From IMG/VR virus record IMGVR_UViG_3300027771_001853, positions 124,001-188,000 of that record: a DNA stretch of 64,000 bases. One strand, 5' to 3'. Of this stretch, positions 21,423 to 64,000 are shown piece by piece. The notes under the pieces are model-generated. The model was not told the DNA's origin, searched no databases, and saw only the letters and a list, made by a program, of their open reading frames with translations. Position 1 is the stretch's first letter. Each line of letters starts with the position of its first letter. Position numbers and translations under genes: made by a program.

Positions 21423-21732
21423 AAAAGAAGAAGTGGTTTTCGACTGCCTGCTTATAGTCTTGTAAAGAAGCTACTAGAGGATAAGGAATAATCAATATTC
21501 TTCCGTCAGGAATATTCCACTCTAACCCACCGTATGTAGGGTTAGCTGCCATTATCAACCAACCAAAGTATGGGGAACCGTAATATTCTTCACTAAATTT
21601 ATCCATTCTACTTTTTCCCATTTTATATATAACCTTCTTATCGGTAGTTTTAGATGGTAAAGTAACAAATGGCACTGTTTGTGATTGTCCATTGATGGAA
21701 AATTGTGCGTATCTATTGTAGTATTGTGACAT
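21412..21732 (-). CDS. Small baseplate protein, LysM-like (gp53 / tail-X-like)
   Basis: RMDKFSEEYYGSPYFGWLIMAANP...IPDGRILIIP. Confidence 0.75.
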   Translation of the reverse strand: MSQYYNRYAQFSINGQSQTVPFVTLPSKTTDKKVIYKMGKSRMDKFSEEYYGSPYFGWLIMAANPTYGGLEWNIPDGRILIIPYPLVASLQDYKQAVENHFFFYGR

Positions 21733-41022: not shown

Positions 41023-42141
41023 ATGGCTAATATCGATAGTACAGCAAGAAATAGATTATATACCCAAGCAAAGCATTTATTAGGTGCTCCTATAAGGGGT
41101 ATTGAATTGGAGGAGGAGATGATGGACACTCTACTAGATTTATCTATTTTAGATTATGGGATGTATGTACAGGATTGGTTGATAGAAAATCAATGGGCTG
41201 GGGTAGCTGGTATTAATGTTAGTGAAGTAGATTTAGCTTCGGCATTCCTAACCAGAAGTTTAGATTTTGAAACCTCATTTACTTACGCGTATTCTAAGAT
41301 AGCTGGTTTACAGGCTGGGGGACCGTGGGAATTAAAAAAAGATTTTGTTATGTTATCTCCAGGACAACAAATTTACCAAATACCAAAATGTAGAGAAGTG
41401 AATGAAGTTTTATGGTTTGCTAGGGCCGAACTTGATAGTATGATGATTGACCCGTTTCTTGGTGGGTTTGGTGGAATGGGTGGTATTGGTCAAGGTGGTG
41501 GAATGGGTGGAGCCCAGATGGGTGTTATGGGGTCTTATTATATGATGCCAGCTTTCGATATCCTATTAAGGATGGGTGACCGTAACCTTAAAAATCGTTT
41601 AATCGGTGGTGACTTAACTTATAGAATAACAGCAGGACCTGAAGGTACTAAATTTTTACATCTATATTCCACTCCAGGTGGTAGATTTGATTTCGGTAAT
41701 ATGGAAAGAAACCAATCTAAGGTTTGGTATTGGTATTATGAAACTTGTACTGATAGAGATAACTGTTTAAGTGACAATCCTGATGTGGTGAGATTACCTT
41801 CTGATGTACCTATTGATGACATACAATGGAATGAGTTAAATGCTCCAGCTAGAGCATGGGTAAGACGTTACTTCTTTGCGATGTGTAAAGAAACACTTGG
41901 TAGGGTTAGGGGTAAGTACCAGGGTGCTTTAAAGGTACCTGACGCTGATTTAACCATGGATTGGGACACATTACTTACTGAAGCTAAGGATGAGAAATCA
42001 AAATTAATTGAGGAGCTTATGGCAAGATTAGAAAGATTACGTAATGACAAGATGTTGGAACGTAAGGCTTCAGAAGCTGAAAATTTAAATAAATCTCTCG
42101 GGTACAGACCTATGAATCCGGGAAGTATATACGTGATATAA
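41023..42141 (+). CDS. Neck / head-tail adaptor protein (gp13-like)
   Basis: LLGAPIRGIEL...WVRRYFFAMCKETLGRVRGKY...L.MDWDTLLTEAKDEK, typical of gp13-like adaptors. Confidence 0.75.
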   Translation: MANIDSTARNRLYTQAKHLLGAPIRGIELEEEMMDTLLDLSILDYGMYVQDWLIENQWAGVAGINVSEVDLASAFLTRSLDFETSFTYAYSKIAGLQAGGPWELKKDFVMLSPGQQIYQIPKCREVNEVLWFARAELDSMMIDPFLGGFGGMGGIGQGGGMGGAQMGVMGSYYMMPAFDILLRMGDRNLKNRLIGGDLTYRITAGPEGTKFLHLYSTPGGRFDFGNMERNQSKVWYWYYETCTDRDNCLSDNPDVVRLPSDVPIDDIQWNELNAPARAWVRRYFFAMCKETLGRVRGKYQGALKVPDADLTMDWDTLLTEAKDEKSKLIEELMARLERLRNDKMLERKASEAENLNKSLGYRPMNPGSIYVI

Positions 42142-43010
42142 TGGCATTCAGAACAAAAGCAGATTTTTCAAGACAAATATACCAAAGATGTGGTACAACC
42201 GCTATCATGTCAGGGTCCACCTATATGGGTGATAATTTAAGTGTGGGTTATTTTAGTGGTGAAACTTATAATTTTAGTGTAACCGAAACAACAAGTGGAT
42301 TAACTGAGGTAGCTGGTATCCATACAGGTGTAACCACAGTACTCGCTGTTAATATGGCCCCGGTACTAAGTGGTAGGTCTTCAATACAAATAAACCCAAC
42401 ATCGGTAAGGACTGGTACAGCTCAAGACGATATGACACTAGAAAGTAATGGTGATGTTAGAATTACTGTGTCTTCTAGAAGGTTTAAAACTAACATAGAA
42501 CCACACACTTTTTCTAATTTAGATAATTTATTATTATTAGAACCTAAGCTTTTCAATTACAAACAAACAGGTGAGGAGGACTTTGGGTATATTGCGGAAG
42601 AGGTGGAGGACCTAGGTCTTAAAGATTTTGTAAGTTATGAATTAGATGGGGTAACACCTAGAAACGTAAAATACAAATATCTAGCTATAGGACTTATAGA
42701 GTTACTAAAAAAAGATGTTATTAATTTTAACCAAAATAAGGTTACTAAAGTTATTAGTGGGGAACATACTTCTGAAGGTGAAGACTATATTATAACCAAA
42801 GGAAGTGGTGCCACAATATTGTTAGATGATAAGAAAAATGGTAGGATTTACATAAAATCCATGACCACTACCATGGTAAAACCTTTAAGTGGTTTAATCG
42901 ACGAAAAATGGTCGGAGATTGAATTAGGTGAGGAGAGTAGTGTAGAACTGGTTCACCATGAAAATAACTGGTATATTTTATCTTCTGACGGAATTAAGGA
43001 GTCTAATTAG
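42141..43010 (+). CDS. Fibre-like protein with intramolecular chaperone (peptidase S74-like) domain
   Basis: VSSRRFKTNI...LEPKLFNYK...FGYIAEEVE...VKYKYLAIGLIE. Confidence 0.75.
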   Translation: MAFRTKADFSRQIYQRCGTTAIMSGSTYMGDNLSVGYFSGETYNFSVTETTSGLTEVAGIHTGVTTVLAVNMAPVLSGRSSIQINPTSVRTGTAQDDMTLESNGDVRITVSSRRFKTNIEPHTFSNLDNLLLLEPKLFNYKQTGEEDFGYIAEEVEDLGLKDFVSYELDGVTPRNVKYKYLAIGLIELLKKDVINFNQNKVTKVISGEHTSEGEDYIITKGSGATILLDDKKNGRIYIKSMTTTMVKPLSGLIDEKWSEIELGEESSVELVHHENNWYILSSDGIKESN

Positions 43011-49206: not shown

Positions 49207-49497
49207 TTATACAAAGTCTGTTCCGTAAAGTACTAGTTCACCATCTATACCTAAAGTACCACCTTGATTTATATATTCATCCGCATGAAATGTTTGCATG
49301 TTTTCAAAGATGCAATAGGTGTCCCCAACTTTGAGTGGGGATGGGTGAGCTCCTAGACTTAACATTTTTAGTAAGTCTTTAGTTCCCGCTACAGTGTGAC
49401 ATAACTGAGTTAACGTCACGCTAGAATAGAAAGTAGTTGGTAGGGGTATGTCCCCACCTTGGAAAACTTCTATTATATTTTTACAATTACAACTCAT
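49207..49497 (-). CDS. Small hypothetical protein
   Basis: 96-aa ORF translationally coupled to the 1051-aa gene. Confidence 0.6.
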   Translation of the reverse strand: MSCNCKNIIEVFQGGDIPLPTTFYSSVTLTQLCHTVAGTKDLLKMLSLGAHPSPLKVGDTYCIFENMQTFHADEYINQGGTLGIDGELVLYGTDFV

Positions 49498-52400
49498 TAC
49501 TTATATAGGTTACCTATTAATGTAGCACTCGCTTTTTTATTGGTGTCTACTCTATTAATAATTATTTGCACTATATCGTTTGGCCCAACGCAGAACGGTA
49601 AAGTTTCTACTATAACATCAGTAATTACCGAATTGGGGTATCTCTTGATGGTAAATGCACTTACATTGTCCACTAAAATCGATTTAAATTTAATACCTTC
49701 ATGCTTCGTAACGTCTATATAAGTGTCAAATCCATCAAAATCTAAGACTGTTGTTGGTACTGGAAAGTTTAACATTACGTCAACAGAATCACCTTCAGTA
49801 TAGTATACCGCTCTTCCTTGGTTACACGGTGTTTCACCACACTGACAGTCTATAAGACCATATCTATCTTTTTCTACTAAGAAATTATGTTGTATTTCAT
49901 CCACACCTAAAGGTTTTAAATAATACCTAAACTGTGATATTGCCCCCATAAATGTCCCTGCAAAATTTTCTGTTATACAATCTACCTCGGAATCCACAAT
50001 TATATCACAACCATCACAACCATCAAACCTAAAAGATTCTAATAAACCTTGTGAACCACCACCCCAACTAATATTAAATGGTACCCCAACTTGTAATTGA
50101 TTTGCTGTATTAAGTTGTCTTGGTATCACTTCTTCAAAATTTCTATCCACGAAAACTGGTCTACCATTAACATAAATTGTTAATGTACCCATTCTAAATT
50201 TCTTTTCCTGTACCCATTTTTTTGTAAAATTTAAATAGGTAGGTAGTTCTATATCATTATACCCAAATACCGAATCTACTCCAGGTATCGGTTCGTGTAT
50301 TAAATCATTTACACCACCTTTATTTTCTAAATCACAACAATCCCAACAATAGTCTCTTTCAAATACAGCACTAACGTAAAGCCAAGGTGCTTCTGTTTGT
50401 CCGGTAAAATCACATATAATATCATCACTAAAACGATTTACTACAGTACATGCTGTTATGTAGGTAAAAGCTGTACCACAATTAGGGTTACCAGAACCTA
50501 CTTTATATGGGTGACCACATCTATCGTAATGTATTGTTTCGTCGGTAGTTCCCGTAACAACACAACCACCAGAGAAATATAAAGCCCTATATCCCACCCT
50601 ATAACCTGTTTCACAATCACCACTTAACATTAGAGCAAAATTATTACTACAACAATCAACATAGTAAGGGTACGTTGAAGCTGAAACACAATCTTCATGT
50701 ACGTTCCCACAGTTATCAGTATGGGTACTACATCCCGCAGTTTGTAGTGTTATAGAATCACCGGAACAAGACGGTTCACAAGTTTCTATACAATTTTCTC
50801 CAGAATAGGGTATCCTAAATTTATTCTCAGCTCTTGTACCCATATAAAAGAATATCCCTTTATTTTCTGGGAACAAATCATTTAATGTGTACCCATCACA
50901 TATATTATTACACCTAGGCCTAATAATGGTTTCCACCGTCCATCCACACTCCACTCTTGTTGGTAGTACCTCATATGGGTAACCTTGTAATTTGTAGAAT
51001 CCTTGATAGAACCCACCATTTAATTCATTATAATAACCTTCACAACTACCAGTAGCACTAGTTATACTGTAATTAATATTATAACTACTATAACCAGTAA
51101 CTGGTTTTAATTTTAAACGACAGTCATAATCGTACGGACTATGTGTTAATCCACTTGGTAGTATGGACCATATATTCATTACGTCATTAGCTGTCCTTGC
51201 ACTTTGTGTTACCACATGCACTGTAACGTCAGATTCATAATAACTACAAGTTGTAGTTTCTGTAACTGGTGAAGTTGTTGTGGTTGTAAATGGTGGCCAA
51301 GCGGTTGTTGTCGTTGTTGTTTCCCCTATCCATCCTTGGTCACAATGAGTACAAGAACTAAATACACCAGCAATTATGGTAGCTTGGCTACCTCCCCAAC
51401 CGGTTGTCCCACTAATTACCCTATAACAATCCGTAGAACAGTCAGGCCATCCCGACTCTAAACGATAATAGCTGTCAGCGGATAATGTTATGTCTAAACA
51501 AGATGAACCCGTTAGAACGACTGTAATCGTCCCACCTGTACTTACACATGGTTCTACCTTATACAATAATTTACATGTTGTTGTAGTTGTGGTTGTTGGT
51601 ACTAATGTGGTAGAACTTGTTGTTGTGGTGAGGTGGGGGTTGTATGTCGTGGTTGTAGTTGTTGGACACAAATCCGAACACACCCCACTAGATGTAGGGT
51701 CACAGCACCCACTAAAAGGACCATTAATCACCAACCCTTGGATGTTAGAACCTATAGTTTGCCCACAACCACTAATAATTTGTCTACAGTGTTCTATACC
51801 ATTAGAGTTTGGTGGTGATAAGACCTCGTAATAACTCCCACCTAATAGTGTGGATGCTGATAAAATCTGGTCAAATTGTACGACATTACCGTTCGCTGAA
51901 CAATTTCTCATCGTATAACAATATCCTGTTATCGGAGGTGAGGTTGTTGTGGTTGTTGTTACCGCTGACCATGGCATTGTTGTACATCCAGAACTTAAGG
52001 ACATAAACGTACTAGCTGTACCCCCAGTAAAATCGGTAACAGTTAATTTGACCCTTGATGGTCCTTTGTAAGTTTGTGCGTATGTATTATCAAAAAATCC
52101 GTACACGGTATCCCCTGTACCAACAAATTGGTATGATTGACCACTGTAACCACCCCAAGAATCACTAGAAGTGTATGCGGTACCAAATGTAGCTAGATTA
52201 AAAGTAGTTCCAGTATATGGGTAAGCTTGTTGTTCCCATTCGTAAGTATATGGTCCGGTACCACCACTTGTAACCCCAGATAACGTGTGGGTAAACGCGG
52301 AACCATTAGTATACTCACAGGCCTTTAACCAATGCATGGTACGTATTGCGTGGTCAAATTGGGAGTGTGCTGGTTGACCGAACCTAAGTGTATTCCAATT

Positions 52401-52652
52401 TGCCGCGGAAACATATAGTCCACCATCACCTCCAGTATCACCAGACATTTTTATTGTATCACCAATAAAGTAATATCCTTCATCGAAAAATGGTGGTTGG
52501 TACCCAAATGCGTTACTAGCATTATTGTAAATATAAGTCAGTGAACCCCCTGGTTGTAGTGGGTTTTCTTGGTCTGATGCCCATATAGCCCCCGGATTAC
52601 AGTAATCTGGATTAGCATATAGTGAAACATGTACGTTACCTGTATAGGCCAT
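49497..52652 (-). CDS. Cys-rich structural protein with poly-Thr linkers and a C-terminal LamG/ConA-like region
   Basis: Several T4-T8 runs. C-terminus GWTVETII...GTLTIYVNGRPV...ISWGGG...FMGAISQFRYYLKPL...EIQHNF. Confidence 0.6.
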   Translation of the reverse strand: MAYTGNVHVSLYANPDYCNPGAIWASDQENPLQPGGSLTYIYNNASNAFGYQPPFFDEGYYFIGDTIKMSGDTGGDGGLYVSAANWNTLRFGQPAHSQFDHAIRTMHWLKACEYTNGSAFTHTLSGVTSGGTGPYTYEWEQQAYPYTGTTFNLATFGTAYTSSDSWGGYSGQSYQFVGTGDTVYGFFDNTYAQTYKGPSRVKLTVTDFTGGTASTFMSLSSGCTTMPWSAVTTTTTTSPPITGYCYTMRNCSANGNVVQFDQILSASTLLGGSYYEVLSPPNSNGIEHCRQIISGCGQTIGSNIQGLVINGPFSGCCDPTSSGVCSDLCPTTTTTTYNPHLTTTTSSTTLVPTTTTTTTCKLLYKVEPCVSTGGTITVVLTGSSCLDITLSADSYYRLESGWPDCSTDCYRVISGTTGWGGSQATIIAGVFSSCTHCDQGWIGETTTTTTAWPPFTTTTTSPVTETTTCSYYESDVTVHVVTQSARTANDVMNIWSILPSGLTHSPYDYDCRLKLKPVTGYSSYNINYSITSATGSCEGYYNELNGGFYQGFYKLQGYPYEVLPTRVECGWTVETIIRPRCNNICDGYTLNDLFPENKGIFFYMGTRAENKFRIPYSGENCIETCEPSCSGDSITLQTAGCSTHTDNCGNVHEDCVSASTYPYYVDCCSNNFALMLSGDCETGYRVGYRALYFSGGCVVTGTTDETIHYDRCGHPYKVGSGNPNCGTAFTYITACTVVNRFSDDIICDFTGQTEAPWLYVSAVFERDYCWDCCDLENKGGVNDLIHEPIPGVDSVFGYNDIELPTYLNFTKKWVQEKKFRMGTLTIYVNGRPVFVDRNFEEVIPRQLNTANQLQVGVPFNISWGGGSQGLLESFRFDGCDGCDIIVDSEVDCITENFAGTFMGAISQFRYYLKPLGVDEIQHNFLVEKDRYGLIDCQCGETPCNQGRAVYYTEGDSVDVMLNFPVPTTVLDFDGFDTYIDVTKHEGIKFKSILVDNVSAFTIKRYPNSVITDVIVETLPFCVGPNDIVQIIINRVDTNKKASATLIGNLYK

Positions 52653-52681
52653 AAAGTAATTATTTATTTATATATAAATAA

Positions 52682-53653
52682 TCAGTAAGGTCGTTTCGAC
52701 TCAACGAATCGCTTTATTTCTTCTACATATTTTATTGCACCGAAATCTGGTGAGTAATTTTGGAACTTTTCTGGGTTATTTTTGTACTCTGTGAATGGAC
52801 ATTTATTAATAAATTCACCCTTATAAAACTTTTCTCCTTTCATCTCATCTAGTATTCCAGCTAAATGAAATATGTTTTTTTCTTCATATCTAGAAACTGG
52901 GTCAGTGGCCCAACTAAAAGCCAATTCAGGGTGTAAAGCTGTTTCTTTTTCAAAATACCACATATTCCATAATATGGACCACATTTCCGCAGTCCAGAAT
53001 TGTATGTGAGCGGGAATTGGGTGTTTGTCCCCAAACTTCTTAGTAGCGTCATATATCCTATTACAATCAATATCTACCTTATGCCAAAAATGATAATCAG
53101 TATCCTTTATAAGATATTGTGCTCCCCCAGATTTACTATTATTTTGTTTTATTACATCCACTGATACACCAACCTTATCTGCCATATCTTCCAATAATTC
53201 GATATCACCTAGTTGTGGGTGCTGTGATTTATACCTATCACAACAACCTTTTATGTAATTATAATCTATGTAACCAGGACATTCAGAAACATAACTTATA
53301 TCATCAAGTAACATTGACCCAAAATCCGGTAGTTTCCTAAATAAAATATCTGAATCAGTTAAGAATATACACTTACCATCTTGTGGGTATTCCTTTAAAT
53401 AGTGTTTTACTAAGTGTGGTTTAATACTTGGGATGTACGACCTATTTGTTCTAGTATCTTTATAAAAATGAATATTATCAGGGTAGTCTCTTAGTAACTT
53501 TTTTAACCCTTCACTTGGTTCTTGAGCTCCATTCATTAAACCAAATATAGCTCTACATTTTTTAATAATCCCAAATTTCTCAAAATTAAAGAATAACATT
53601 CTTATTTGCCAATGAAAGTATGGTACGTCTGGTTGTGCACAGATAAAAATCAT
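52682..53653 (-). CDS. GT-A fold glycosyltransferase resembling peptidyl O-glycosyltransferases (SERGT1/HPAT-like)
   Basis: PYFHWQ, YIPSIKPHLVKHYL, DxD motif FLTDSDILF, GGAQYLI, WTAEMWS and IFHLAG. Confidence 0.7.
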   Translation of the reverse strand: MIFICAQPDVPYFHWQIRMLFFNFEKFGIIKKCRAIFGLMNGAQEPSEGLKKLLRDYPDNIHFYKDTRTNRSYIPSIKPHLVKHYLKEYPQDGKCIFLTDSDILFRKLPDFGSMLLDDISYVSECPGYIDYNYIKGCCDRYKSQHPQLGDIELLEDMADKVGVSVDVIKQNNSKSGGAQYLIKDTDYHFWHKVDIDCNRIYDATKKFGDKHPIPAHIQFWTAEMWSILWNMWYFEKETALHPELAFSWATDPVSRYEEKNIFHLAGILDEMKGEKFYKGEFINKCPFTEYKNNPEKFQNYSPDFGAIKYVEEIKRFVESKRPY

Positions 53654-53704
53654 ATATATTTTTTATATAAAATTAAATTGTTTTTACCTATAGTAAATGG
53701 ATTA

Positions 53705-55627
53705 TCAAATAGAAGAATTACATGACGCACAATCCGTGTAAGAAGCGTCTATAGTGTGTTGTATAGGTCTGGTAGTACTTCCTGCATTATAGTAACACTT
53801 GTCATTAACTTTTATATAATTAGATGAGGTAGGAGCTACCACTAAAGAACCATCCCATGAAGAAATGTTTAATTTAGATTCTACCTCATCTATACGATTG
53901 GCAATACCAATAAACCCATTAGGCCAAATACTATTTATATCTCCAGATGAAGCTCCACAACACATATACCTTGGGTAATTACCAGCAAAATTAATTCCGA
54001 CTATTTTTAATGCTCCACCTACACAACATAAAATCGCTGCACCGGAATCACCTCCGACACCAGGAGATGGGTCACCATCACCAGCTGATTTGAATAATAT
54101 TTGTTGGTCGTACATAAAATTAGGGTTACCTAATTTTATATTAGCAGCATTAACTGTTATTATTACTACGTCAGGATAACTCACACTTAAGATGTTACCA
54201 CTACTTCTACCTACTTTATAAACATAACTCCCCACCAACCCATTTACTTCTGCTGTTGTAGCGTGTTGGTATGGTCCCCAAGCTAGACCTAATATAGTTG
54301 TTGTTGGCTCTTCTGTTAATTCTATAAGTGCAGCGTCTACTTTATTTTGTGTGTAGTTATAACATAGTGGGTGGAATCTTTTCACTGAACCCATCTGTAC
54401 TCCCGCACTTGAATTTCCATTATCAGGATAACTAGGTTGTTGTGTTACGTACCCTGTTGACCAATTTGCTCCTTGTAACCCACCATTAGCAGTTGCACCA
54501 GCGGCAGAACCACAATCTATACCAGGATAATTAATTGGGTCCGCGTTTAGCCCAGCTGAAGCAAAATTATAACCTATAACATGATTATTAGTCACACCAA
54601 CTATTTTATCATCGGTATTATCGTAGGCTAACCACCCTAAAGTACCACTACCCGAACCACCCATAGATGGTGGGACTAAGGTTGTACCAATACTAACACC
54701 ACCAGGAATAGCTCTTTGGTTACTACTAGGTGTATAATAAGCGACACCATGGTCTGAACACGCAGGAACACTAATAGATGTTATATTACCACTGCAATAA
54801 CCTAGATTACCTGGACCATAATTAGGACTACATTGTGTACTTTCAGCTAGTATTAAAGCTTTATCATACACACATGTAGAATGTAATACTATCTCACTTG
54901 AAGTTGATATATCTGTTGGGATACCTCCTAGTTCTGACGGCAATAATTCACTATTACTTAATTCACTTAGGTTTTTCTTTTCTATTACATTTAAAGTAAT
55001 ACAATAAATTTCAGTATCCACATTATTTGTAATTTTTCGTCCCACGTACATAGATGTTAGACCTGTGGAAGTGAATGTACCAGAATATTTGTTTACCACA
55101 TAATCATGATAGGATTGGTGTTCAATTCCGTTAGAGTCGGTATAACCAGAATATATAGGGTCACTAGATATTGTGGCTCCTTTAACTCTGACTGTTGGTT
55201 GGACGTTTATAGTCATTTGTATTCTACCACCACCCCCTACGATTGATGGTGTTATAATATTTCCAGGTGTACACCCACTTTGACCATCACATGGTCTAAA
55301 TAATGTAGAAGTTGTTGGTGGTGAGTATGTTGTTGTCGTTGTGGTACCTGGTTGTGTTGTAGTTGTCGTAGTAGCTGGAGCTGCGGTTGTGGTCGTAGTA
55401 GTAGTAAAACAAGTATCGATTATCAAATCAGAACAGCTTGTACATCCAGAAGCATCTATTATTTGTAATCCGTATGTACCACAACATGCTGTAAAATACA
55501 CACAATCGTAATTTGTTGTAGCTACATTATTACACCCAGTTTCACATCCTTGGTTACAAAGACTTACACTATAAGGTGATACCCCACCACCCATACTAAT
55601 TGTTATACCTGTTAAATTACATGCCAT
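53705..55627 (-). CDS. Cys-rich / poly-Thr protein with trypsin-like (S1) serine protease domain
   Basis: GTLG...VTNNHV (His), VDAALI (Asp), KVGRSSG, GGDSGA (Ser) and VGINFAG. Confidence 0.8.
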   Translation of the reverse strand: MACNLTGITISMGGGVSPYSVSLCNQGCETGCNNVATTNYDCVYFTACCGTYGLQIIDASGCTSCSDLIIDTCFTTTTTTTAAPATTTTTTQPGTTTTTTYSPPTTSTLFRPCDGQSGCTPGNIITPSIVGGGGRIQMTINVQPTVRVKGATISSDPIYSGYTDSNGIEHQSYHDYVVNKYSGTFTSTGLTSMYVGRKITNNVDTEIYCITLNVIEKKNLSELSNSELLPSELGGIPTDISTSSEIVLHSTCVYDKALILAESTQCSPNYGPGNLGYCSGNITSISVPACSDHGVAYYTPSSNQRAIPGGVSIGTTLVPPSMGGSGSGTLGWLAYDNTDDKIVGVTNNHVIGYNFASAGLNADPINYPGIDCGSAAGATANGGLQGANWSTGYVTQQPSYPDNGNSSAGVQMGSVKRFHPLCYNYTQNKVDAALIELTEEPTTTILGLAWGPYQHATTAEVNGLVGSYVYKVGRSSGNILSVSYPDVVIITVNAANIKLGNPNFMYDQQILFKSAGDGDPSPGVGGDSGAAILCCVGGALKIVGINFAGNYPRYMCCGASSGDINSIWPNGFIGIANRIDEVESKLNISSWDGSLVVAPTSSNYIKVNDKCYYNAGSTTRPIQHTIDASYTDCASCNSSI

Positions 55628-55659
55628 ATCTTTATATAAATACTTTAATTAATCTTATT

Positions 55660-57570
55660 TTACAAACAACTCCCATCATCTAAATTAGCTCCAGGATAAT
55701 AATTCGATGCTCCAGGAGGACCTATCGGTGAATTATATGAAGGTGCATTTGGCCCACCCATTGGACACAACCCATATACACCAAAGAACCCACCAGTACA
55801 AGTATCACCAACAAGTGGGTCTGGTGCTATACCGGTCGTACAACAACCACCATCCATACAACCATAAATAAAAGCTATACAAGAACCGTCCTCACAAGTA
55901 GCTGATGGGTCATAATTGAATGAGGTAGCGTCTGTACATCCAAATACACATACTGTTGTAGTGGTTGTCACTATAGCACCACAACAAGAAGTATCCCCAA
56001 CATTCCCATTCCATTGCAAAGTATTAATATTCATTTGTAATGCACCAGCACAATCAATATAAAGCCCATTTATCATAGTGGGTAACGATGGTGGTGGTAC
56101 ACCTATTTCTCCAGTGAAATTATAATTAGCACCATTTGGGTCTAAACAATTACAATAACCAAAACAAGTTCCTAAATCTATTTGAGCACCAGCATAGTAG
56201 TTATATGCTTCACAACCAGGGTAAGGTGACGTAAACCAACCAGTGGGGTTAGTACAACTGCCCGCATTTGGACAATTTGTCCCTACACAATTTCCACCAT
56301 CCATACAACCGTATACAAGTGCTACACATGAACCATCATCACATATCGCATTTGGGTCATAGTTACATGCTTGACTATCTGTACAACCGTCAGGTAAAAT
56401 ACATGAACCATCATCAATAATTGCGGTTGGGTCATAGTTACATGCTGTTGGGTCTGTACAACCGTATATACTTGACGTGGTTGAGGTTGTGGTACAAAGA
56501 CATAAATCACCATTCATCCCAGTATCAACCGGTTGTCCAGCTGGTGGTGGTAAGGTTGGTGGGAACCATTGGTATATATCCCCGACTTGGTTACATTCAT
56601 ATTGTGTCAGACAAAGATTACAACCATCAATAGCTCCTGGTTGGGTGGACCACACTGGTGGGGACAAAGTAATTAAAGGAGAACCACTACATGGTGGACC
56701 AATTAGTTTATAACATTCTTGTAACCCAGTACCATTTAAATTATTCCATGATTGAGCCAAAAACACCGTTCCTGGAACCATACCAGATATGATAGCCGTC
56801 CAATCATACGGGAAGTTCACTTCTACTCTATAGATTGAACCGTCACAACACTTTTCCACACACCAATATGGGTTAGGTGGTTGTGTTGTTAGGGTTGTAG
56901 TGGTACACACATCACCAGGTGGAATAGTACAGCTCTTACACGTTACCGGGGTAGGGTTTATAAGTGTACCGTCAGCTTCAGCACATACATAATTCGCTGT
57001 AAATTCTATAATCTCCCAACAAGCTCTATAGTGAGTAATACTACCATCGAAAAAGCTAACATAAGTCACATCCAATTCTAAGATTGTACCAATAGGGTAT
57101 GACCATACTATAGCATATAAGGTTGGTCCACCTGTTGCTGTTGCCATAAATTCTAGTGTCCCAAATTGTGGACACATTTTTACACCCCTATTTACCACTA
57201 TTGTTGTTGTGGTTGTTGTAGTTTGGTTGCATCCATCACAACATCTACAATATAAAGAAACCTCCGAATCACAAGGTGGACCTGGTGTTGAAGAGGTACA
57301 GTATTGACATATCGCGTCTCTGGCTGATGGTAATAGACTTAACCAATAAGAGTAATTACATGGTTCACCTTGGTCTAAACCACCACAACAAGAGTCTAAG
57401 TTACTTGTACCCGGTTGGTTGGCATTGTTACAACAAGACGTATTATCTTGACACAATTGTTGTGTAGCATAAATTGTATTATTAATTGGAGCTATCCCAA
57501 AGACACAACACGGATAAGGTGTTTGTATTGGGTTAGCTAAAGTTAATTCTGTGGGACAGTACCAAGACAT
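55660..57570 (-). CDS. Cys-rich repeat protein (GCTD..A.NYDP.A..DDGSC repeats) with poly-Thr linkers
   Basis: Three near-complete GCTD...DGSC repeats plus GCMDG variants with insertions. Very high Cys content. Confidence 0.75.
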   Translation of the reverse strand: MSWYCPTELTLANPIQTPYPCCVFGIAPINNTIYATQQLCQDNTSCCNNANQPGTSNLDSCCGGLDQGEPCNYSYWLSLLPSARDAICQYCTSSTPGPPCDSEVSLYCRCCDGCNQTTTTTTTIVVNRGVKMCPQFGTLEFMATATGGPTLYAIVWSYPIGTILELDVTYVSFFDGSITHYRACWEIIEFTANYVCAEADGTLINPTPVTCKSCTIPPGDVCTTTTLTTQPPNPYWCVEKCCDGSIYRVEVNFPYDWTAIISGMVPGTVFLAQSWNNLNGTGLQECYKLIGPPCSGSPLITLSPPVWSTQPGAIDGCNLCLTQYECNQVGDIYQWFPPTLPPPAGQPVDTGMNGDLCLCTTTSTTSSIYGCTDPTACNYDPTAIIDDGSCILPDGCTDSQACNYDPNAICDDGSCVALVYGCMDGGNCVGTNCPNAGSCTNPTGWFTSPYPGCEAYNYYAGAQIDLGTCFGYCNCLDPNGANYNFTGEIGVPPPSLPTMINGLYIDCAGALQMNINTLQWNGNVGDTSCCGAIVTTTTTVCVFGCTDATSFNYDPSATCEDGSCIAFIYGCMDGGCCTTGIAPDPLVGDTCTGGFFGVYGLCPMGGPNAPSYNSPIGPPGASNYYPGANLDDGSCL

Positions 57571-57606
57571 ATTTTTATATTATTTTATTCATTAGTGATA
57601 AATAGT

Positions 57607-60600
57607 TTAGAACGGTAGACTTTGGCAGCTAGCTGGAATTGGCACCAACAACCCAGCATTACATTCAGTACAATTTGCCCATGTTTGGTTTAACGTAGTA
57701 TACCCGTCTGTATCTAGGTATGACATAGAGGTAGGTATAACTTGGTAACATTGTGATTGTAATGCGCTACCACCTACCGGTAATAAGATTAATTCTATTA
57801 CCGTACCAACCACAAATGAAGTTAATAAATTTTCTAAATTACTCCCCGTAGTAGGTTTATATTCCTGGTAATAAAGAGTACCTAGTTTTGGACAACACGC
57901 TCTAATTAAAAGATTACTAGATACTGGTTCAGTTGTGGTGGTTGTGGTACCTGGACAACATCCCTCTGCTAACTCAGTATAACCATGACCTGGTGGGTTA
58001 TAACTGATTAAATGGGCACTTAACTGGCTACAAGAATGGGGAGAAGGGTTACAGATAGTAACAAAACTATTAACGTTAACTAAAGTAGTAGCATTACCTA
58101 TAACCTCCACACAAAGAATTTTATCTCCAACCACAGGAATATTGAAGGTACCCGCAAAGGTATCTCCCACATTCAGTCCTTGGATGTATGTTAGTAGTGA
58201 CCCTGTTGCGGTATAGTGTTTATATGGTGCACAACACATTCTAATACCTAATACCACTGCAACTGATGTGGTTGTGGTGGTATTACCTAAACAACAGTCT
58301 GGGTCTGAAGCTGCACCCCAAACCCATAGTGGTGGGTTAGGTACGGTCTGGAGTGATGAACCAGCACTTATTGAACTAGAAGTTACATATATAGGATAAA
58401 TGTCTTTGTCTTGGGTAACACCATAAATGTTTTGGTTATAACAATATAACCCAAAGGTTACAACCCCACCCATATTAACCGTACCTAATAGAACACCAGT
58501 ATTCAAATCATAATAAGCTAATTCACTTCCTGTACTAGTTGCTAAAGCGACTATTAATGTATTACTCCCCGCTAAGTATAATATATCCCCCTGAACAACA
58601 TCACTCCCTGTTAAAGCTATAGAACTAGATAGTACAGCTGTATTGGTGGTTATATCTATGCTACATATATCCCCCATACATGGTGTAGCGTTCCAAGAAC
58701 TACCCCCAATTAAAGTAGTAGAATCTATAGCCGTTAAACCATTACCTATTTGAGCTGGAGTCGTAATCTCTCTGTTCCATGTAACATTACAAGTAACGGG
58801 GTCTATAATATATTCTTGAATTTTTATACTATAATATACCCATATTAGATTACCATACCTTGCTATATCTGCACTATAGCCTAGATTTTGTGTCGCTGTA
58901 AATAATAAATTAGTCTGATTTGTCGTATGGTTATAATTGTAAATGCCTGGTGGATTTGAACCATCTACAAATAATACACCACAAGAATCACATAGAGCTG
59001 TGGTTGTGGTGGTTGTTGTTGGTGACGTGGTGGTTGTGGTAGTTGGGCAACAAGTACCTAAATTATTATTACCAAGGAAAGCATCTAACTCGATACAGTC
59101 ATTCTGCATTGAGTATCCTACCGCGGTATCAACTATAAGACCACTAGGGTTAGTTATGATATTCCAACAAAGATTAGGTGTAGTTACCGAAGCACTACTT
59201 AAACTACCATAAAAGGCTTGGCCTATATTGTAACTTTGAATAAACGCTAATAGGTTACCTGTGACCACATACTGAGTAAAAGGGTAACAACATTCTTCTA
59301 GCCCTAACAAACTTGATGAGGTTGTGGTTGTGGTAGCTGGACAACAACCATTTAAAAGGTCTGGGAAACCATAACCGTTGTAAAGTTGTGTGTTACCATT
59401 TAAATCAGTACAGTCATTTGAGTATACCGTAGGACTAAAAAGCCATTCAAACTGACCCGTTTGTACTTGAGGGGAAGATAAAGGTATATTCATATCCATC
59501 TCCATACAAGCTGTAAGGTCCGTCCCATTAGGTAATGTTATTGTCATTACAAAAGCTCTAGTAAATGGTGGAAGACTATAGTCTATAAGGTTATAAAGTG
59601 AACTATTATAAATTACCTCATATTCCGTATAAGGGTCACAACACAATTTAAGACCAACTAAAGCACTAGTAGTTGTAGTTGTTGTTGGTGGTGAGTATGT
59701 TGTTGTTTCACAACATGGTGTAGCGTTCGCTGATACCAGACAATCTGGTTCGTATTGGTAAATACAGTTAGGTCCTGAACTACAGGGTTGACAAAAACAA
59801 TTAACCGTACAAAGACACAAACGTCCAGCCCAAGATAACATATCGTTAGGTGCATTATTGTGCATTTTTCCTATCACTTGACTCCAGTGGTCACTATAAA
59901 GAAAATCTTGAGGCCATGAATTAGTTGTGTTTATTACATTTAACGCGTCTATTAACATTTCCCAATGAGCGTTAATTGTTACTGGTCCTGATAAAAAATA
60001 TGACCCATTTGATGCGGATGAAACAAAACCGTTAATTTTATAATAATACCCGTCACCATTATATAAAGAACCAGTATTTTCACATATGTAACTTTGACCG
60101 ACAACAATACTAGGGTTTATAAAGAAATAGTTATCGAAGATTTCACTAGTTCCGTATGTAGCAACCAAGTAATCTGTATATATTTGATTATTAGTGTATT
60201 GTCCATTAACTGTCGTAATACCAGGTGGTGTAAGTTCAGTATCACTGCTATCACAACCTATCGCGTCTACACCTGGAACTGGTGTAAGTGACGAAACACA
60301 TTCCCACCACTGTGTTGTAGTTGTTGTTACTGAACATTGAAAGTACCATGGTGATTGAGCAATCCAACTTAAACAGGTAACACAGTTAGGTTGACCTGTT
60401 GTCCAATCGGCGGGTGGGAGTGGTGGTGTTGTAAAACCACCCGTAAGTATTACCCAACTTGGGCAAGAGGTATCTATAATTTTAAAGCAAGAAGTGAAGA
60501 CAACCCCTGCAGGGTCCGATACTGTCAACGCAAGAACCGTTTGTCCTGGAGTGTAAGCAGCATTTGCTATTATAACATATAAAGGACTACCCAATGTGAC

Positions 60601-63540
60601 CGTATATTGGTTGTATGGTGAACAACAATCTTCTAACCCCAGTCTGTCACAAATAATTGTTGTTGTGGTTGTTGTTACTGGTAGACAACATGGGTTTCCT
60701 TGAGCTGCTACATCACATAACACGTAACTACTATAGACACAATTTAATGCAGGTGGTACACAGGGTTGACAAAAACAAGGGTTAAAGCAACCACATTCTA
60801 CAACATTTATTAATAACGTATCTCCAGCGGCATTGTTAGTCATTCTTACAATAACTTGGTCCCAAGTATCTGACGTTACGAAATCTTGAGCCCATCCATT
60901 AGTTTGGTTTATACCGTTTAGAATCGTTATAAGCATAGCCCAAGTAGATAATGTGGTTGTTTGACCTGAGAAGACGTAGGAAATATTAGCATTACTTAAT
61001 TGTATCTCACCCACCTTTTCATGTCTACCTAAACCACTATACAACAAACTTAAATTTTCACAACCAGCTAGTGATAGTGTGGCTGTTGGGTTTATATAGT
61101 GATAGAACATGTATAGTGCTGCAGCACCAAAATTCTGGGTAATATGGTTAACAGCCTCAACTCTATTTTGGTATGGTGTATTTCCACCATTAATCCCGGC
61201 TGGTATAACGTATGTTGTTGGGAATTGGTCCCCACACCAGTTTGCGTCTATACCGGGTACAAGTGGTGGTGGTGTAATACATTCGTGCCAATCATCTGGA
61301 GGACAACACCCTAATTCCATACCTGGAAAATAATACGTTCCTGCCACTATAGCGATATTAAAATCAATACAACCCATATCGGTAGTAGGTGATAACCACA
61401 AAAACCCATTATTTATTACATTTATGGGTGATGGATTATTGATTACTTCAGCACAAGTTTGTATTACCGAACCGTCAGGTAAAGTCAACTCGAATATATG
61501 AGCACTACCAATACTAAGCCCTTGTATTAAACTATATAAGAAATTACCACTAGGGATAATATATTGGTCATAAGGTGGACAACAAAGTTCCACACCTATC
61601 GCTAGTGTCGTAGTTGTGGTTGTTGTTGGTCCTGGTGTTGTGGAAGTTGTTGTTACTGGTTGACAACATGGTATTGCGTTAGCAGCGATATCACAAATAC
61701 TAAAATCATTAAATATACAAGGTGTGACCCCAGGTGTGAAACATGGTTGACAAAAACAAGGTGGTTGGTTACATGTACAAGGTCCCCCATAGGTATTCCA
61801 TGACTCCGACATGTTATTTGACTCCTGTTGTATTAACATAACAACCGTGAATCTAGAATCGATATAAGTAAAAACTCCTGGTGTGATACTATTAAGATAA
61901 TCTATAAACGATTGCCAGTTGTTGATGGCACCACTACCGACATAAAGCACATTTGCAGCGTTAGTTATAATATGTGTAGCTTTACTATAACCCATACCTC
62001 CCTGTGCGTATGGGTTTGTTGATGGAACAGACACACATTGGTTTGCCAAGGTATTCGGTGGAGTACCGGTTTCATGATAAAAGCTGCCCCAGGTTACATT
62101 AATGGGGATATTCCCATTTATTTGTTCATCCATTAAATATTCACACGCTCCAATAATGGAGATAGAAGCATGTGGTTTTAGGGTTAAACTATCACAGGAG
62201 GAACCATTAGTGATAGTTGCTAATGGTGGTGTTATGCATTCGTACCACACTGTAGTTGTAGTTGTTGTTAGTGGTCCGGTAGTGGTTGTTGTGGTTGGGG
62301 TACTAGTAGTGGTTGTGGTTGTTTGACCAGGTAACGTGGTGGACGTGGTTGTTTGCCCTGGACAACAAGGTATACCATTAGCTGATATAAGTGCTATAGA
62401 TAACGCATTACAACCTAGCATATTTATTAGTCCGTTTGATGTTAGGTCCGATTGGGTCTCCACCATATTAGCGACAGGTATACCAACAATAGGGTTACAT
62501 AATGGTTTCCAACATTCATTTTGTACTATCCCACCTGACACTAATAAGTTTGGTATTTGGAAGGCATAATTATCATCACAATTAAGTGAATTAAGTAATA
62601 GTAATAAATTACCTGTGGCCCCATATTGTACTGGTACACCAGTACCCACACAACAACTTTCTATCCCACATGTCACACAAGGGTCACCAGTAGTTGTAGT
62701 GGTACAACAATTATAACATGTGGTTGTAGTTGTGGTTATAGGAGCTACTGTTGTGGTAGTAGTTGTTAGGGGTTGTATTCCAGTTGTAGTGATAGTGATA
62801 ATAGGGCACTGTTGACAATCGACAACACTACCAAGTAGTCCTCTTGTTGGTGGTGTTCCAAAAGTGTTTCCACACTGTCCTCCAACATACCCAGTATGCC
62901 AATCACCACTACCCGGATTATTACTTACATCTATATCATAACTGGTTGGTCTGGGACTGTCACCCTCATAGTACATACATGTACCATCAGATAATTGAAT
63001 AACATCACCCTGACTTATAGGCCCTATAGCAGCAGTTAACTGGTTATGGAATGCCTGATTATTTGTATCAGTATTTGGTAAAAAACATGAACCTAAAGGC
63101 GGGGCCCCTGGTGTAGGAACTACTGGTACTGGATTAAAAGCGAGTGAATTATCACAATAACGCCAAGAATGATTGAGTCCGAAAACGGATGGTTGGGTTT
63201 CACACGCATCACAATCACCATATGGTTCAATAAACCAACCAGAATTTTGTAAAGAATGACCACCAAGATATTCAACATGTATAGCTTCTGGTGTTGCGAA
63301 GTCCCCTATATACTCAAAACAAGTCCAAAATTGTGGATATGGAGTTGAGTATAGTCTAATAAAGTCCCCAGGTACTATTTGATGCCCTGCACTTTGTTGG
63401 TAATAATAATTCTGAAAATGTTCATTGTTAGCTATTGTATTTCCTGGAGGCGAACCGGATTTACCAATATTACAATCGAAAGGGACTGGTACACTAAAAG
63501 GTTCGCTAGTAAAACAAGCTCTATATTTTTTATATCCCAT
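57607..63540 (-). CDS. Giant modular Cys-rich protein with poly-Thr linkers
   Basis: 1977 aa. Seven G[LIV]xxCC.PY.QY modules, three W.EC...CFCQPC...PCC modules and a propeller-like segment (YSADIAR...IGNGLT...VVQGDILY...WGAAS), mostly separated by T-runs. Confidence 0.8.
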   Translation of the reverse strand: MGYKKYRACFTSEPFSVPVPFDCNIGKSGSPPGNTIANNEHFQNYYYQQSAGHQIVPGDFIRLYSTPYPQFWTCFEYIGDFATPEAIHVEYLGGHSLQNSGWFIEPYGDCDACETQPSVFGLNHSWRYCDNSLAFNPVPVVPTPGAPPLGSCFLPNTDTNNQAFHNQLTAAIGPISQGDVIQLSDGTCMYYEGDSPRPTSYDIDVSNNPGSGDWHTGYVGGQCGNTFGTPPTRGLLGSVVDCQQCPIITITTTGIQPLTTTTTTVAPITTTTTTCYNCCTTTTTGDPCVTCGIESCCVGTGVPVQYGATGNLLLLLNSLNCDDNYAFQIPNLLVSGGIVQNECWKPLCNPIVGIPVANMVETQSDLTSNGLINMLGCNALSIALISANGIPCCPGQTTTSTTLPGQTTTTTTSTPTTTTTTGPLTTTTTTVWYECITPPLATITNGSSCDSLTLKPHASISIIGACEYLMDEQINGNIPINVTWGSFYHETGTPPNTLANQCVSVPSTNPYAQGGMGYSKATHIITNAANVLYVGSGAINNWQSFIDYLNSITPGVFTYIDSRFTVVMLIQQESNNMSESWNTYGGPCTCNQPPCFCQPCFTPGVTPCIFNDFSICDIAANAIPCCQPVTTTSTTPGPTTTTTTTLAIGVELCCPPYDQYIIPSGNFLYSLIQGLSIGSAHIFELTLPDGSVIQTCAEVINNPSPINVINNGFLWLSPTTDMGCIDFNIAIVAGTYYFPGMELGCCPPDDWHECITPPPLVPGIDANWCGDQFPTTYVIPAGINGGNTPYQNRVEAVNHITQNFGAAALYMFYHYINPTATLSLAGCENLSLLYSGLGRHEKVGEIQLSNANISYVFSGQTTTLSTWAMLITILNGINQTNGWAQDFVTSDTWDQVIVRMTNNAAGDTLLINVVECGCFNPCFCQPCVPPALNCVYSSYVLCDVAAQGNPCCLPVTTTTTTIICDRLGLEDCCSPYNQYTVTLGSPLYVIIANAAYTPGQTVLALTVSDPAGVVFTSCFKIIDTSCPSWVILTGGFTTPPLPPADWTTGQPNCVTCLSWIAQSPWYFQCSVTTTTTQWWECVSSLTPVPGVDAIGCDSSDTELTPPGITTVNGQYTNNQIYTDYLVATYGTSEIFDNYFFINPSIVVGQSYICENTGSLYNGDGYYYKINGFVSSASNGSYFLSGPVTINAHWEMLIDALNVINTTNSWPQDFLYSDHWSQVIGKMHNNAPNDMLSWAGRLCLCTVNCFCQPCSSGPNCIYQYEPDCLVSANATPCCETTTYSPPTTTTTTSALVGLKLCCDPYTEYEVIYNSSLYNLIDYSLPPFTRAFVMTITLPNGTDLTACMEMDMNIPLSSPQVQTGQFEWLFSPTVYSNDCTDLNGNTQLYNGYGFPDLLNGCCPATTTTTSSSLLGLEECCYPFTQYVVTGNLLAFIQSYNIGQAFYGSLSSASVTTPNLCWNIITNPSGLIVDTAVGYSMQNDCIELDAFLGNNNLGTCCPTTTTTTSPTTTTTTTALCDSCGVLFVDGSNPPGIYNYNHTTNQTNLLFTATQNLGYSADIARYGNLIWVYYSIKIQEYIIDPVTCNVTWNREITTPAQIGNGLTAIDSTTLIGGSSWNATPCMGDICSIDITTNTAVLSSSIALTGSDVVQGDILYLAGSNTLIVALATSTGSELAYYDLNTGVLLGTVNMGGVVTFGLYCYNQNIYGVTQDKDIYPIYVTSSSISAGSSLQTVPNPPLWVWGAASDPDCCLGNTTTTTSVAVVLGIRMCCAPYKHYTATGSLLTYIQGLNVGDTFAGTFNIPVVGDKILCVEVIGNATTLVNVNSFVTICNPSPHSCSQLSAHLISYNPPGHGYTELAEGCCPGTTTTTTEPVSSNLLIRACCPKLGTLYYQEYKPTTGSNLENLLTSFVVGTVIELILLPVGGSALQSQCYQVIPTSMSYLDTDGYTTLNQTWANCTECNAGLLVPIPASCQSLPF

Positions 63541-63575
63541 AGTTTATTATTTAACAATAAATACCCACATCATGA

Positions 63576-63998
63576 TTAAATAGGCGTACATGTAGTTGTC
63601 GTTGTTACTGGACAACATGGTATCCTTAGTGTCGGGTCTTGGTTCTGATAAGGTAACCAAGCTTGGAGACCAGCACACGGTGTTGGTGCTGGTGGTGATA
63701 GTAGTACGGCCCCTGTCACTGTTGGTCCGGTTGGGCTATTTATTATTCTTGCACAAACCGGTACACCACTGATAATAAATAAGTGTGAGGAACCTAAACT
63801 TAAACCATTTATATCAGTAAGTAGTGTTCCAATTGCTACGTATTGTTGGAATACTCCGTTCGTATCAGAACAACACTCTTCCAAACCTCTACCAGTTACA
63901 TTTACAGTTGTTGTTGTTGTGGTTGGGCAACACCCGACTGATTGTCCTTTGTCTTCACATGTGTCACACTGGTCTGTCAACCCGGCTGGCCAAATAGG
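63576..63998 (-). CDS. C-terminal part of another Cys-rich / poly-Thr modular protein (5'-truncated)
   Basis: The frame is open to the window edge (PIWPAGLTDQC...). It contains a GLEECC...QQY module and two T-runs. Confidence 0.75.
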   Translation of the reverse strand, partial: PIWPAGLTDQCDTCEDKGQSVGCCPTTTTTTVNVTGRGLEECCSDTNGVFQQYVAIGTLLTDINGLSLGSSHLFIISGVPVCARIINSPTGPTVTGAVLLSPPAPTPCAGLQAWLPYQNQDPTLRIPCCPVTTTTTCTPI

Positions 63999-64000
63999 GA

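Follow-up and report, generated by a model that had tools for sequence, protein, structure and literature searches.

Phage glycosyltransferases of the GT-A and GT-B folds are best known for the glucosylation of DNA and for serotype conversion (PMC12619734). In mycobacteriophages (Che8 gp110, Corndog gp38, Myrna), a glycosyltransferase of the phage's own modifies the C-termini of capsid and tail-tube proteins (Freeman et al. 2023, as summarized in PMC12363180 and PMC12619734), and the mycobacteriophages are the only phages in which glycosylation of the virion by the phage itself is reported to have been demonstrated by experiment, with antibody recognition changed in these cases (PMC12363180). 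Here we describe a 64,000-nucleotide (nt) stretch of DNA, hereafter called the window, that derives from a jumbo tailed phage and that encodes a 323-amino-acid (aa) protein set among giant proteins containing many runs of threonine. From its sequence, its predicted structure and the genes that accompany it in other phages, we regard it as probable that this protein is a phage polypeptide O-glycosyltransferase with poly-Thr as its acceptor. By analogy, virion glycosylation in mycobacteriophages is the functionally closest known system, and the sequences involved are not detectably related: a tblastn search with the 323-aa protein at E ≤ 1e-3 returned 75 phage records, of which none was from a Mycobacterium phage.

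A comparison with the mycobacteriophage systems shows both shared and differing features. In the phages of Gram-positive hosts that carry relatives of the gene described here, the candidate acceptors are likewise tails at the C-termini of capsid and major tail proteins, with the enzyme gene again located in or beside the structural operon. Unlike the mycobacteriophage systems, the acceptor signature here is pure poly-Thr, and glycosylation is predicted from the genes. The jumbo phage itself differs further, as its tracts link modules inside giant proteins and do not form tails; its enzyme gene lies between these modular proteins and near tail genes, and a capsid gene was not identified in the window. 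The concept of phage self-glycosylation is known, and within the literature searched there appears to be no earlier report of the enzyme family, of poly-Thr as a tag or of so wide a range of hosts. A full-text search found no papers on PHROG 4417, the family to which the 323-aa protein belongs, or on poly-Thr tails in phages.

The poly-Thr gene block

The window comes from an IMG/VR contig of 297,623 bp (IMGVR_UViG_3300027771_001853), in which the enzyme gene is 100% identical; the gene calls on the Joint Genome Institute (JGI) record follow the same order. One enzyme gene sits within approximately 8,800 residues of poly-Thr-linked modular protein, distributed over five giant proteins, with gaps of 29 to 51 nt between the genes of the block and all of the genes on one strand. 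The original prediction for this locus, made from the DNA letters and a list of open reading frames (ORFs), had placed a glycosyltransferase gene inside a cluster of mucin-like poly-Thr proteins; the ORF positions, lengths and motifs that it quoted proved correct, and all six ORFs are on the minus strand (Table 1). The arrangement that it described, in which the glycosyltransferase is flanked on both sides by five poly-Thr proteins, is confined to this part of the window. All 29 runs of at least four Thr fall within the five ORFs that flank the 323-aa ORF, and none occurs in the other 32 window ORFs. Scanning of stop-to-stop ORFs gave the same picture, with 27 runs of at least five Thr (T≥5) at positions 49401-64000 and none at positions 1-49400; by chance, approximately 0.007 T6 runs would be expected per 60,000 aa. 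The Thr codons within the runs are mixed (ACA 88, ACC 41, ACT 31, ACG 8), which rules out slippage at a DNA repeat as the source of the runs and indicates that poly-Thr has been selected at the protein level. The five flanking proteins contain 4-9% Cys and 0.6-2.5% Lys and possess no signal peptides.

The cluster reaches well past the window. The ORF at the window edge had been given as a poly-Thr protein of more than 140 aa, which is accurate as to its type but not its size, as it forms the C-terminal end of a 4,512-aa protein with at least 34 further poly-Thr runs; these, of four or more Thr each, were counted over the final 3,321 residues and lie about 100, 280 or 440 residues apart. A megablast search with 12.6 kb of the region returned no match among cultured phages, and scans of the region for promoters and terminators gave a signal at the level of shuffled sequence.

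Fold, motifs and family of the 323-aa protein

The 323-aa protein falls into PHROG 4417 (E 1e-65), a family annotated as "unknown function". Searches of NCBIfam and of PDB sequences gave no match for this protein, a profile search against PDB sequences was empty, and no Pfam match at E ≤ 5 was obtained for it or for 38 homologs, apart from one member that matched PF03407 at E 0.17. An AlphaFold2 (AF2) model built on the 38 homologs shows one Rossmann-like alpha/beta/alpha domain, with a predicted local distance difference test (pLDDT) score of 94 and a predicted template modeling (pTM) score of 0.92. Comparison of this model to the PDB with Foldseek gave 152 matches at E ≤ 1e-3, and the best 50 of these 152 are all GT-A enzymes. 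The nearest solved folds are the catalytic domain of UGGT (GT24), WbbM, B3GNT2 (GT31), GTA (GT6), and glycogenin and XXYLT1 (GT8). Among the matches listed in a fold search of BFVD, most are viral glycosyltransferases or uncharacterized proteins.

The motifs that are invariant or nearly so in the 38 homologs are Y12-F-H-W-Q16, Y73-IPSIKP-H80, D100-S-D102 and W220-TAEM-W225. The D100-S-D102 motif is invariant among these homologs and follows directly after the strand at residues 95-98 in the model. Every divergent member of the family (25-36% identity) has D[SC]D at this position, and H263 and five further motifs, including GAQ and W.AEMW, are also kept. The protein lacks a transmembrane segment (the maximum 19-residue Kyte-Doolittle mean is 0.73), and its N-terminus forms the first strand of the fold. 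The 323-aa protein is thus modeled, with high confidence, as a GT-A glycosyltransferase that is soluble and carries an invariant DxD motif. Its earlier identification as a glycosyltransferase is thus supported by the predicted fold and the conserved DxD, and not by any match to a sequence family. GT8, one of the families that had been named for a structural comparison, is among the nearest folds, together with GT24, GT6 and GT31 and at a template modeling (TM) score of approximately 0.4, and no Pfam family accompanies it.

The pattern of conservation bears on whether this protein could be a GT-A scaffold devoid of catalytic activity, whose task in assembly would be to bind poly-Thr segments or to act as their chaperone. 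Its gene is located among assembly genes, and the protein is absent from the annotated structural proteins of phage 1706, both of which would suit such a role. The DxD, H263, GAQ, W.AEMW and other elements that stay invariant across 25-36% identity nevertheless constitute an active-site pattern, and members of the family are fused to other glycosyltransferase domains of the active type, making a dead scaffold very improbable.

These fusions are found within a large family: of 1.84 billion cluster representatives searched, 957 match it at E ≤ 1e-3. Approximately 40% of the best 150 of the 957 members possess an extra C-terminal domain, and the recognizable fusion partners are PF11397 (N-acetylglucosamine transferase), PF10250 (protein O-fucosyltransferase), GT6, Glyco_transf_7C, GT2, methyltransferase and discoidin domains (fused members P0270, P0272, P0289, P0296, P0301, P0309, P0320 and P0381). 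As judged from domain composition, such partners are to be expected of an enzyme that takes part in building glycans, and two of them represent families of protein O-glycosylation.

The same fusions would also be compatible with an enzyme that extends a glycan after a host enzyme has primed the Thr, or that adds a nucleotide-carried group other than a sugar. The recognizable second domains are glycosyltransferases or protein O-glycosyltransferases (O-FucT, PF11397), either partner of a fusion could be the initiator, and the nearest folds include the glycan-extending B3GNT2, the GT6 family, UGGT and XXYLT1. However, this enzyme is the sole recognizable glycosyltransferase in siphophages of 36-40 kb and in the window, where scans of the window proteins against Pfam and other families found no other. 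The hosts of its carriers moreover span the Firmicutes and Bacteroidota, and we know of no cytoplasmic enzyme shared across these two groups that would prime poly-Thr. We consider an extending role unlikely; that no other recognizable glycosyltransferase is present in the window or in the small siphophages makes it likely, from gene content, that the enzyme is the initiating transferase.

Poly-Thr tracts in cultured phages with and without the gene

Nine carriers from different genera were inspected among the 75 phage records: phiFL1A, iLp84, nattely, bIL285, 1706, SA2, phiCTP1, Semele and the Chryseobacterium phage MA9V-3. Their host genera are Enterococcus, Lactobacillus, Lactococcus, Staphylococcus, Clostridium and Chryseobacterium. 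Tracts of at least six Thr (T≥6) are present in all nine, and the enzyme gene is adjacent to them or in the same structural operon. For comparison we used four phages without the gene that were matched by host genus (bIL286, phiFL3A, phiFL4A and A2). The carriers contain 33 T≥6 runs in 213 kb and the non-carriers none in 127 kb; scored as presence or absence (9/9 versus 0/4), the difference gives a Fisher p of 0.0014, to be read with the partial dependence of the nine carriers, some pairs of which are 58-64% identical in the enzyme.

The tracts in these carriers are mostly C-terminal tails on capsid or major tail proteins. In phiFL1A, three Thr runs end the capsid-like gp45 and three more end the major tail protein gp50, at whose stop codon the enzyme gene starts; on its other side lie the tail chaperones. 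In iLp84, the sequence T7-SK ends both the major capsid and the major tail protein; the enzyme gene is found after the capsid gene, and a 126-aa ORF consisting of 34% Thr, iLp84_8, lies between the two. The Thr runs of nattely, SA2 and phiCTP1 are at tail-protein C-termini. In bIL285 and 1706, the C-termini consist of T9-10 followed by [RH]HD, and the capsid or major structural proteins orf50 of bIL285 (L090) and orf10 and orf13 of 1706 (L091) end in near-identical tails, which suggests that in lactococcal phages a conserved terminal signal, recognizable in the sequences, extends beyond the Thr run. The enzyme gene is located just after the capsid gene in bIL285 and after the major structural or tail protein gene in 1706 and SA2, while in Semele and MA9V-3 the runs are in two ORFs immediately upstream of it. 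In SA2, a Thr-rich small ORF overlaps the 3' end of the major tail gene and could, from its position, encode a frameshift extension of the major tail protein; small ORFs of this kind have 90-130 aa and at least 30% Thr.

Poly-Thr and the enzyme gene in metagenomic loci

In IMG/VR, T≥5 runs are present in 36 of 38 non-redundant loci with the enzyme gene, and of the two exceptions one ends just after the gene and the other is a short contig. The density of T≥5 runs per locus is 0.4-0.9 per kb at +1 to +7 kb downstream of the gene, approximately 0.1 per kb upstream, and 0 at +9 to +10 kb. The poly-Thr proteins near the gene belong to at least 14 unrelated protein families, indicating that the enzyme gene is associated with poly-Thr as such rather than with any single partner. 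Taken with the cultured carriers and non-carriers, these loci bear out the co-occurrence of the glycosyltransferase with poly-Thr genes, which had been proposed as a check across related phage genomes. We also considered a single conserved partner gene behind the association and rejected it, as the C-terminal half of the 1051-aa protein, the protease and the other domains have no homologs in 41 related loci. The 1051-, 640- and 636-aa proteins of the window are themselves without homologs in the related loci with the enzyme gene.

The association was also sampled from the opposite direction, using 118 IMG/VR loci picked solely by the DNA pattern (ACN)7; in 73 of these, an ORF of 80 aa or more carries a T≥6 run in frame. 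The enzyme gene was found in six of these 73 loci, abutting the tract each time, and the 45 loci with the pattern out of frame all lack it. Were the gene present on as many as 1% of viral contigs, finding it in six or more of 73 loci would still have a probability of approximately 1e-4. When a genome collection was scanned with narrow peptide patterns, the sole hits were two short contigs from metagenome-assembled genomes (MAGs), so that the scan says little about prophage distribution or host; both contigs (5-6 kb; GC contents of 32% and 54%) have a poly-Thr ORF beside the gene. One of them had been assigned to a Woesearchaeota MAG and the other to a Geobacter MAG (loci L218 and L219), and they look like phage fragments swept into these bins.

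Several findings weigh against poly-Thr as the acceptor of a glycosyltransferase in these phages, and two of them would suit an enzyme with an acceptor other than protein. A distant fused member of the family, P0289, comes from a cell-like cluster (GC 67%) of polysaccharide type, with epimerase, sulfotransferase and GT77-like genes and no poly-Thr neighbor, so that the family as a whole may not be limited to poly-Thr acceptors. Likewise, 67 of the 73 poly-Thr viral loci are without the gene in the short flank that was fetched, indicating that poly-Thr does not require the enzyme. The IMG/VR relatives share synteny and are thus not independent observations, and in phage 1706 a T7 run is found near the C-terminus of orf3, which is annotated as a putative holin. 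The fold matches of the 323-aa protein are distant (E 1e-6 to 1e-4, TM scores of 0.38-0.45, 8-12% identity), and neither it nor its 38 homologs match the Pfam families Glyco_transf_8, Glyco_transf_6, UGGT catalytic domain, Glycos_transf_2 or ricin; an assignment to a CAZy family was likewise not obtained. Lastly, the AF2 model of the 1051-aa protein is poor (pLDDT 46), and it reaches no more than moderate confidence for residues 512-1051, which are beta-rich.

The explanation that P0289 and the 67 loci would favor is one in which the enzyme modifies wall teichoic acid, cell-wall polysaccharide, lipopolysaccharide, capsule or phage DNA, and the poly-Thr segments are plain flexible linkers or tails that travel along with it. 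Such an acceptor would be in keeping with the DNA glucosylation and serotype conversion for which phage glycosyltransferases are best known (PMC12619734), and the acceptor is not readable from the fold. Against it stand the position of the gene inside late structural operons, in lytic and temperate phages alike, the contrast between carriers and matched non-carriers in poly-Thr content, and the abutment of gene and tract in independently sampled loci. A soluble enzyme with no membrane segment is also a poor fit to the modification of an envelope glycopolymer, and no DNA-hypermodification genes are found beside the enzyme gene in the window. We therefore give a non-protein acceptor a low probability.

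Proposed mechanism and comparison with known glycosyltransferases

We propose that the 323-aa protein would be made in the cytoplasm of the infected cell as a soluble, metal-dependent (DxD) GT-A enzyme and would transfer sugar from a host nucleotide-sugar to the hydroxyls of consecutive Thr residues in the phage's own proteins. With a soluble enzyme and poly-Thr proteins that carry no signal peptide, the two would meet in the cytoplasm, and glycosylation would take place before or during assembly, as it does in mycobacteriophages (PMC12363180). The acceptors in the jumbo myovirus would be the poly-Thr linkers between the Cys-rich modules of the five giant proteins, and in the small siphophages of Gram-positive hosts they would be the poly-Thr tails on capsid and tail-tube proteins. 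Where the particle is exposed, this would give it a mucin-like coat of glycans, which in the jumbo phage may take the form of very long, disulfide-stabilized, glycan-stiffened appendages, one with a protease-like domain and one with a beta-rich C-terminal half. The enzyme may add single sugars along the Thr run, and family members with two transferases would build disaccharides or more. We infer Thr as the acceptor and an initiating role for the enzyme, and likewise the virion location of the window proteins and the purpose of the coat, for which stiffness, protease resistance and a glycan shield had been proposed. The enzyme-plus-substrate module that was originally predicted is strongly supported by a co-occurrence that crosses independent phage lineages and by a GT-A fold with a conserved DxD, with the glycan itself a prediction. 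For the family at large, the balance of the evidence leans toward PHROG 4417 being a widespread family of phage polypeptide O-glycosyltransferases that reads poly-Thr as a portable "glycosylate here" tag.

The 323-aa protein shares the GT-A core and the DxD with enzymes of the GT24, GT8 and GT6 families (UGGT, glycogenin, XXYLT1, GTA/GTB and BoGT6a), with B3GNT2 of GT31 and with WbbM. Unlike the GT24, GT8, GT6 and GT31 enzymes, it has no match to a Pfam glycosyltransferase family, and this together with the low identities and TM scores given above places it in a separate family. The order of its motifs had been likened to that of the plant and algal peptidyl-serine alpha-galactosyltransferase SERGT1 (GT96) and hydroxyproline O-arabinosyltransferase HPAT (GT95), a resemblance that may be a lead to kinship. 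SERGT1 and HPAT would be comparable to the 323-aa protein in being GT-A-like and in placing the first sugar on a side-chain hydroxyl of a repetitive, extended peptide. Both are Golgi type II membrane proteins, whereas the 323-aa protein is predicted to be soluble and without a type II anchor; the missing anchor argues against membership in GT95 or GT96 but not against similar chemistry.

The mucin-type N-acetylgalactosamine transferases of GT27, and the Thr/Pro linkers of cellulases, offer a parallel on the acceptor side, as Thr runs between folded domains serve there as dense O-glycan acceptors and the predicted outcome, stiff and protease-resistant linkers, is the same. The GT27 enzymes differ in joining a GT2-like catalytic domain to a C-terminal ricin-type lectin domain and in working in the secretory pathway; the 323-aa protein is modeled as a single domain with no ricin match, and no such pathway is involved here. 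A parallel in cellular setting is offered by GtfA/GtfB, the glycosyltransferases of the serine-rich repeat adhesins of Gram-positive bacteria, where a soluble enzyme acts in the cytoplasm to glycosylate a long Ser/Thr repeat while the protein is still inside the cell. GtfA/B possess the GT-B fold (GT4), in contrast to the GT-A fold predicted for the 323-aa enzyme, which is also phage-borne.

If this reading is correct, self-glycosylation would be a general phage strategy rather than an actinophage curiosity, and it would be predictable from sequence by the presence of the gene together with poly-Thr tails or linkers. A self-made, mucin-like coat would then be present on the capsids, tail tubes and fibers of many phages, including phages of Enterococcus, Staphylococcus, lactic acid bacteria, Clostridium and Bacteroidota, as well as aquatic jumbo phages. 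Carriers of practical interest include dairy phages of lactococci and lactobacilli, VPE25/vipetofem-like Enterococcus phages and 6ec-like Staphylococcus phages. Such a coat would bear on adsorption, stability, adherence to mucus or polysaccharide, serum clearance and the interpretation of cryo-electron microscopy maps. An unannotated family of approximately 950 sequence clusters would also gain a function, and glyco-engineering could make use of a soluble enzyme whose peptide tag is so simple.

The poly-Thr proteins of the window

The features of the block, together with the other ORFs for which coordinates are given, are collected in Table 1.

Table 1. Coordinates of ORFs in the window and in related phage loci
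Feature	Position	Strand	Comment
1051-aa ORF	49497-52652	-	directly downstream of enzyme gene
323-aa ORF, GT-A-fold enzyme	52682-53653	-	PHROG 4417
640-aa ORF	53705-55627	-	Cys-rich module, poly-Thr, protease-like domain
636-aa ORF	55660-57570	-	9.4% Cys, three poly-Thr linkers
1977-aa ORF	57607-63540	-	bead-on-string, 15 poly-Thr runs
Edge ORF, C-terminal end of 4,512-aa protein	63576-64000 (window end)	-	gene call on source contig
2,205-aa ORF	14805-21422	-	giant ORF without poly-Thr
1,655-aa ORF	21732-26699	-	giant ORF without poly-Thr
289-aa ORF	42141-43010	+	Peptidase_S74 domain
iLp84_8	L088:6504-6881		between capsid and enzyme genes
SA2 Thr-rich small ORF	L092:11649-11930		overlaps major tail gene
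Phage 1706 orf3	L091:964-1368		annotated putative holin

The poly-Thr proteins combine different domains around their Thr runs. The 1051-aa protein begins with an N-terminal domain, which is followed by Cys-rich modules with six poly-Thr runs (residues 232-460) and by the beta-rich C-terminal half, for which more than 800 homologs exist, all unannotated. Foldseek searches with the model of this protein returned the lectin-like receptor-binding domains of clostridial neurotoxins at E of approximately 2e-4, with TM scores of 0.1-0.27, a root mean square deviation of approximately 19 Å and at most 10% identity. We take this likeness, seen in a model of low confidence, to be one that beta-sandwiches share in general, and it implies no catalytic or translocation region.

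In the 640-aa protein, a Cys-rich module at the N-terminus is followed by three poly-Thr runs (residues 75-100) and, at the C-terminus, by a domain resembling trypsin-like serine proteases. Residues 294-556 match phrog_20754, annotated "protease" (E 9.5e-13), and motifs of the protease type are found at residues 347 (NNH), 431 (DAAL) and 526 (GDSG). A protease carried on a glycosylated stalk, as this sequence would imply, would be an unusual phage appendage. In the 636-aa protein, a Cys motif of approximately 25 aa, GCTD..ACNYDP..DDGSC, is repeated at residues 370-415 and 540-636, and searches of Pfam, PHROG, NCBIfam and PDB sequences gave no family or structure match for this protein. The 1977-aa protein contains at least seven copies of a Cys module of approximately 100 aa, which is also present in the 636-aa protein and the edge ORF, and three copies of a module of approximately 200 aa. 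Its poly-Thr runs are placed exactly at module boundaries, often after CCP, and a stretch near residues 1550-1715 is beta-propeller-like, with weak PQQ_2/BamB-like matches.

An ORF neighboring the block has a precomputed Pfam match to PTL_trimer, a name that suggests trimer formation. As export signals are absent, the proteins are built like beads on a string, this neighbor is present and the acceptors of the relatives are capsid and tail proteins, it is plausible by analogy that the poly-Thr proteins of the window are virion fibers or decorations.

Other genes of the window and its possible host

The window has a GC content of approximately 35% and encodes parts of a T4-like myovirus, including a tail sheath, a gp19-like tube, gp25 and gp6-like baseplate wedge proteins and a T4 baseplate protein, as well as a family B polymerase, a DnaB-like helicase, a UvsX-like recombinase and a ribonucleotide reductase. 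The presence of these T4-like parts together with replication genes identifies it as a jumbo tailed phage. SprB-type repeats are found beside homologous genes in related contigs, and with the occurrence of the enzyme in a Chryseobacterium phage this hints, at the level of gene content, at a host among the Bacteroidota.

Two other giant ORFs of the window, of 2,205 and 1,655 aa, both lack poly-Thr. The first contains an Amidase_2 (peptidoglycan amidase) domain near residues 1927-2046 and could be a virion-associated lysin. A 289-aa ORF on the strand opposite to that of most genes contains a Peptidase_S74 intramolecular-chaperone domain, which is typical of self-cleaving tail fiber or spike proteins.

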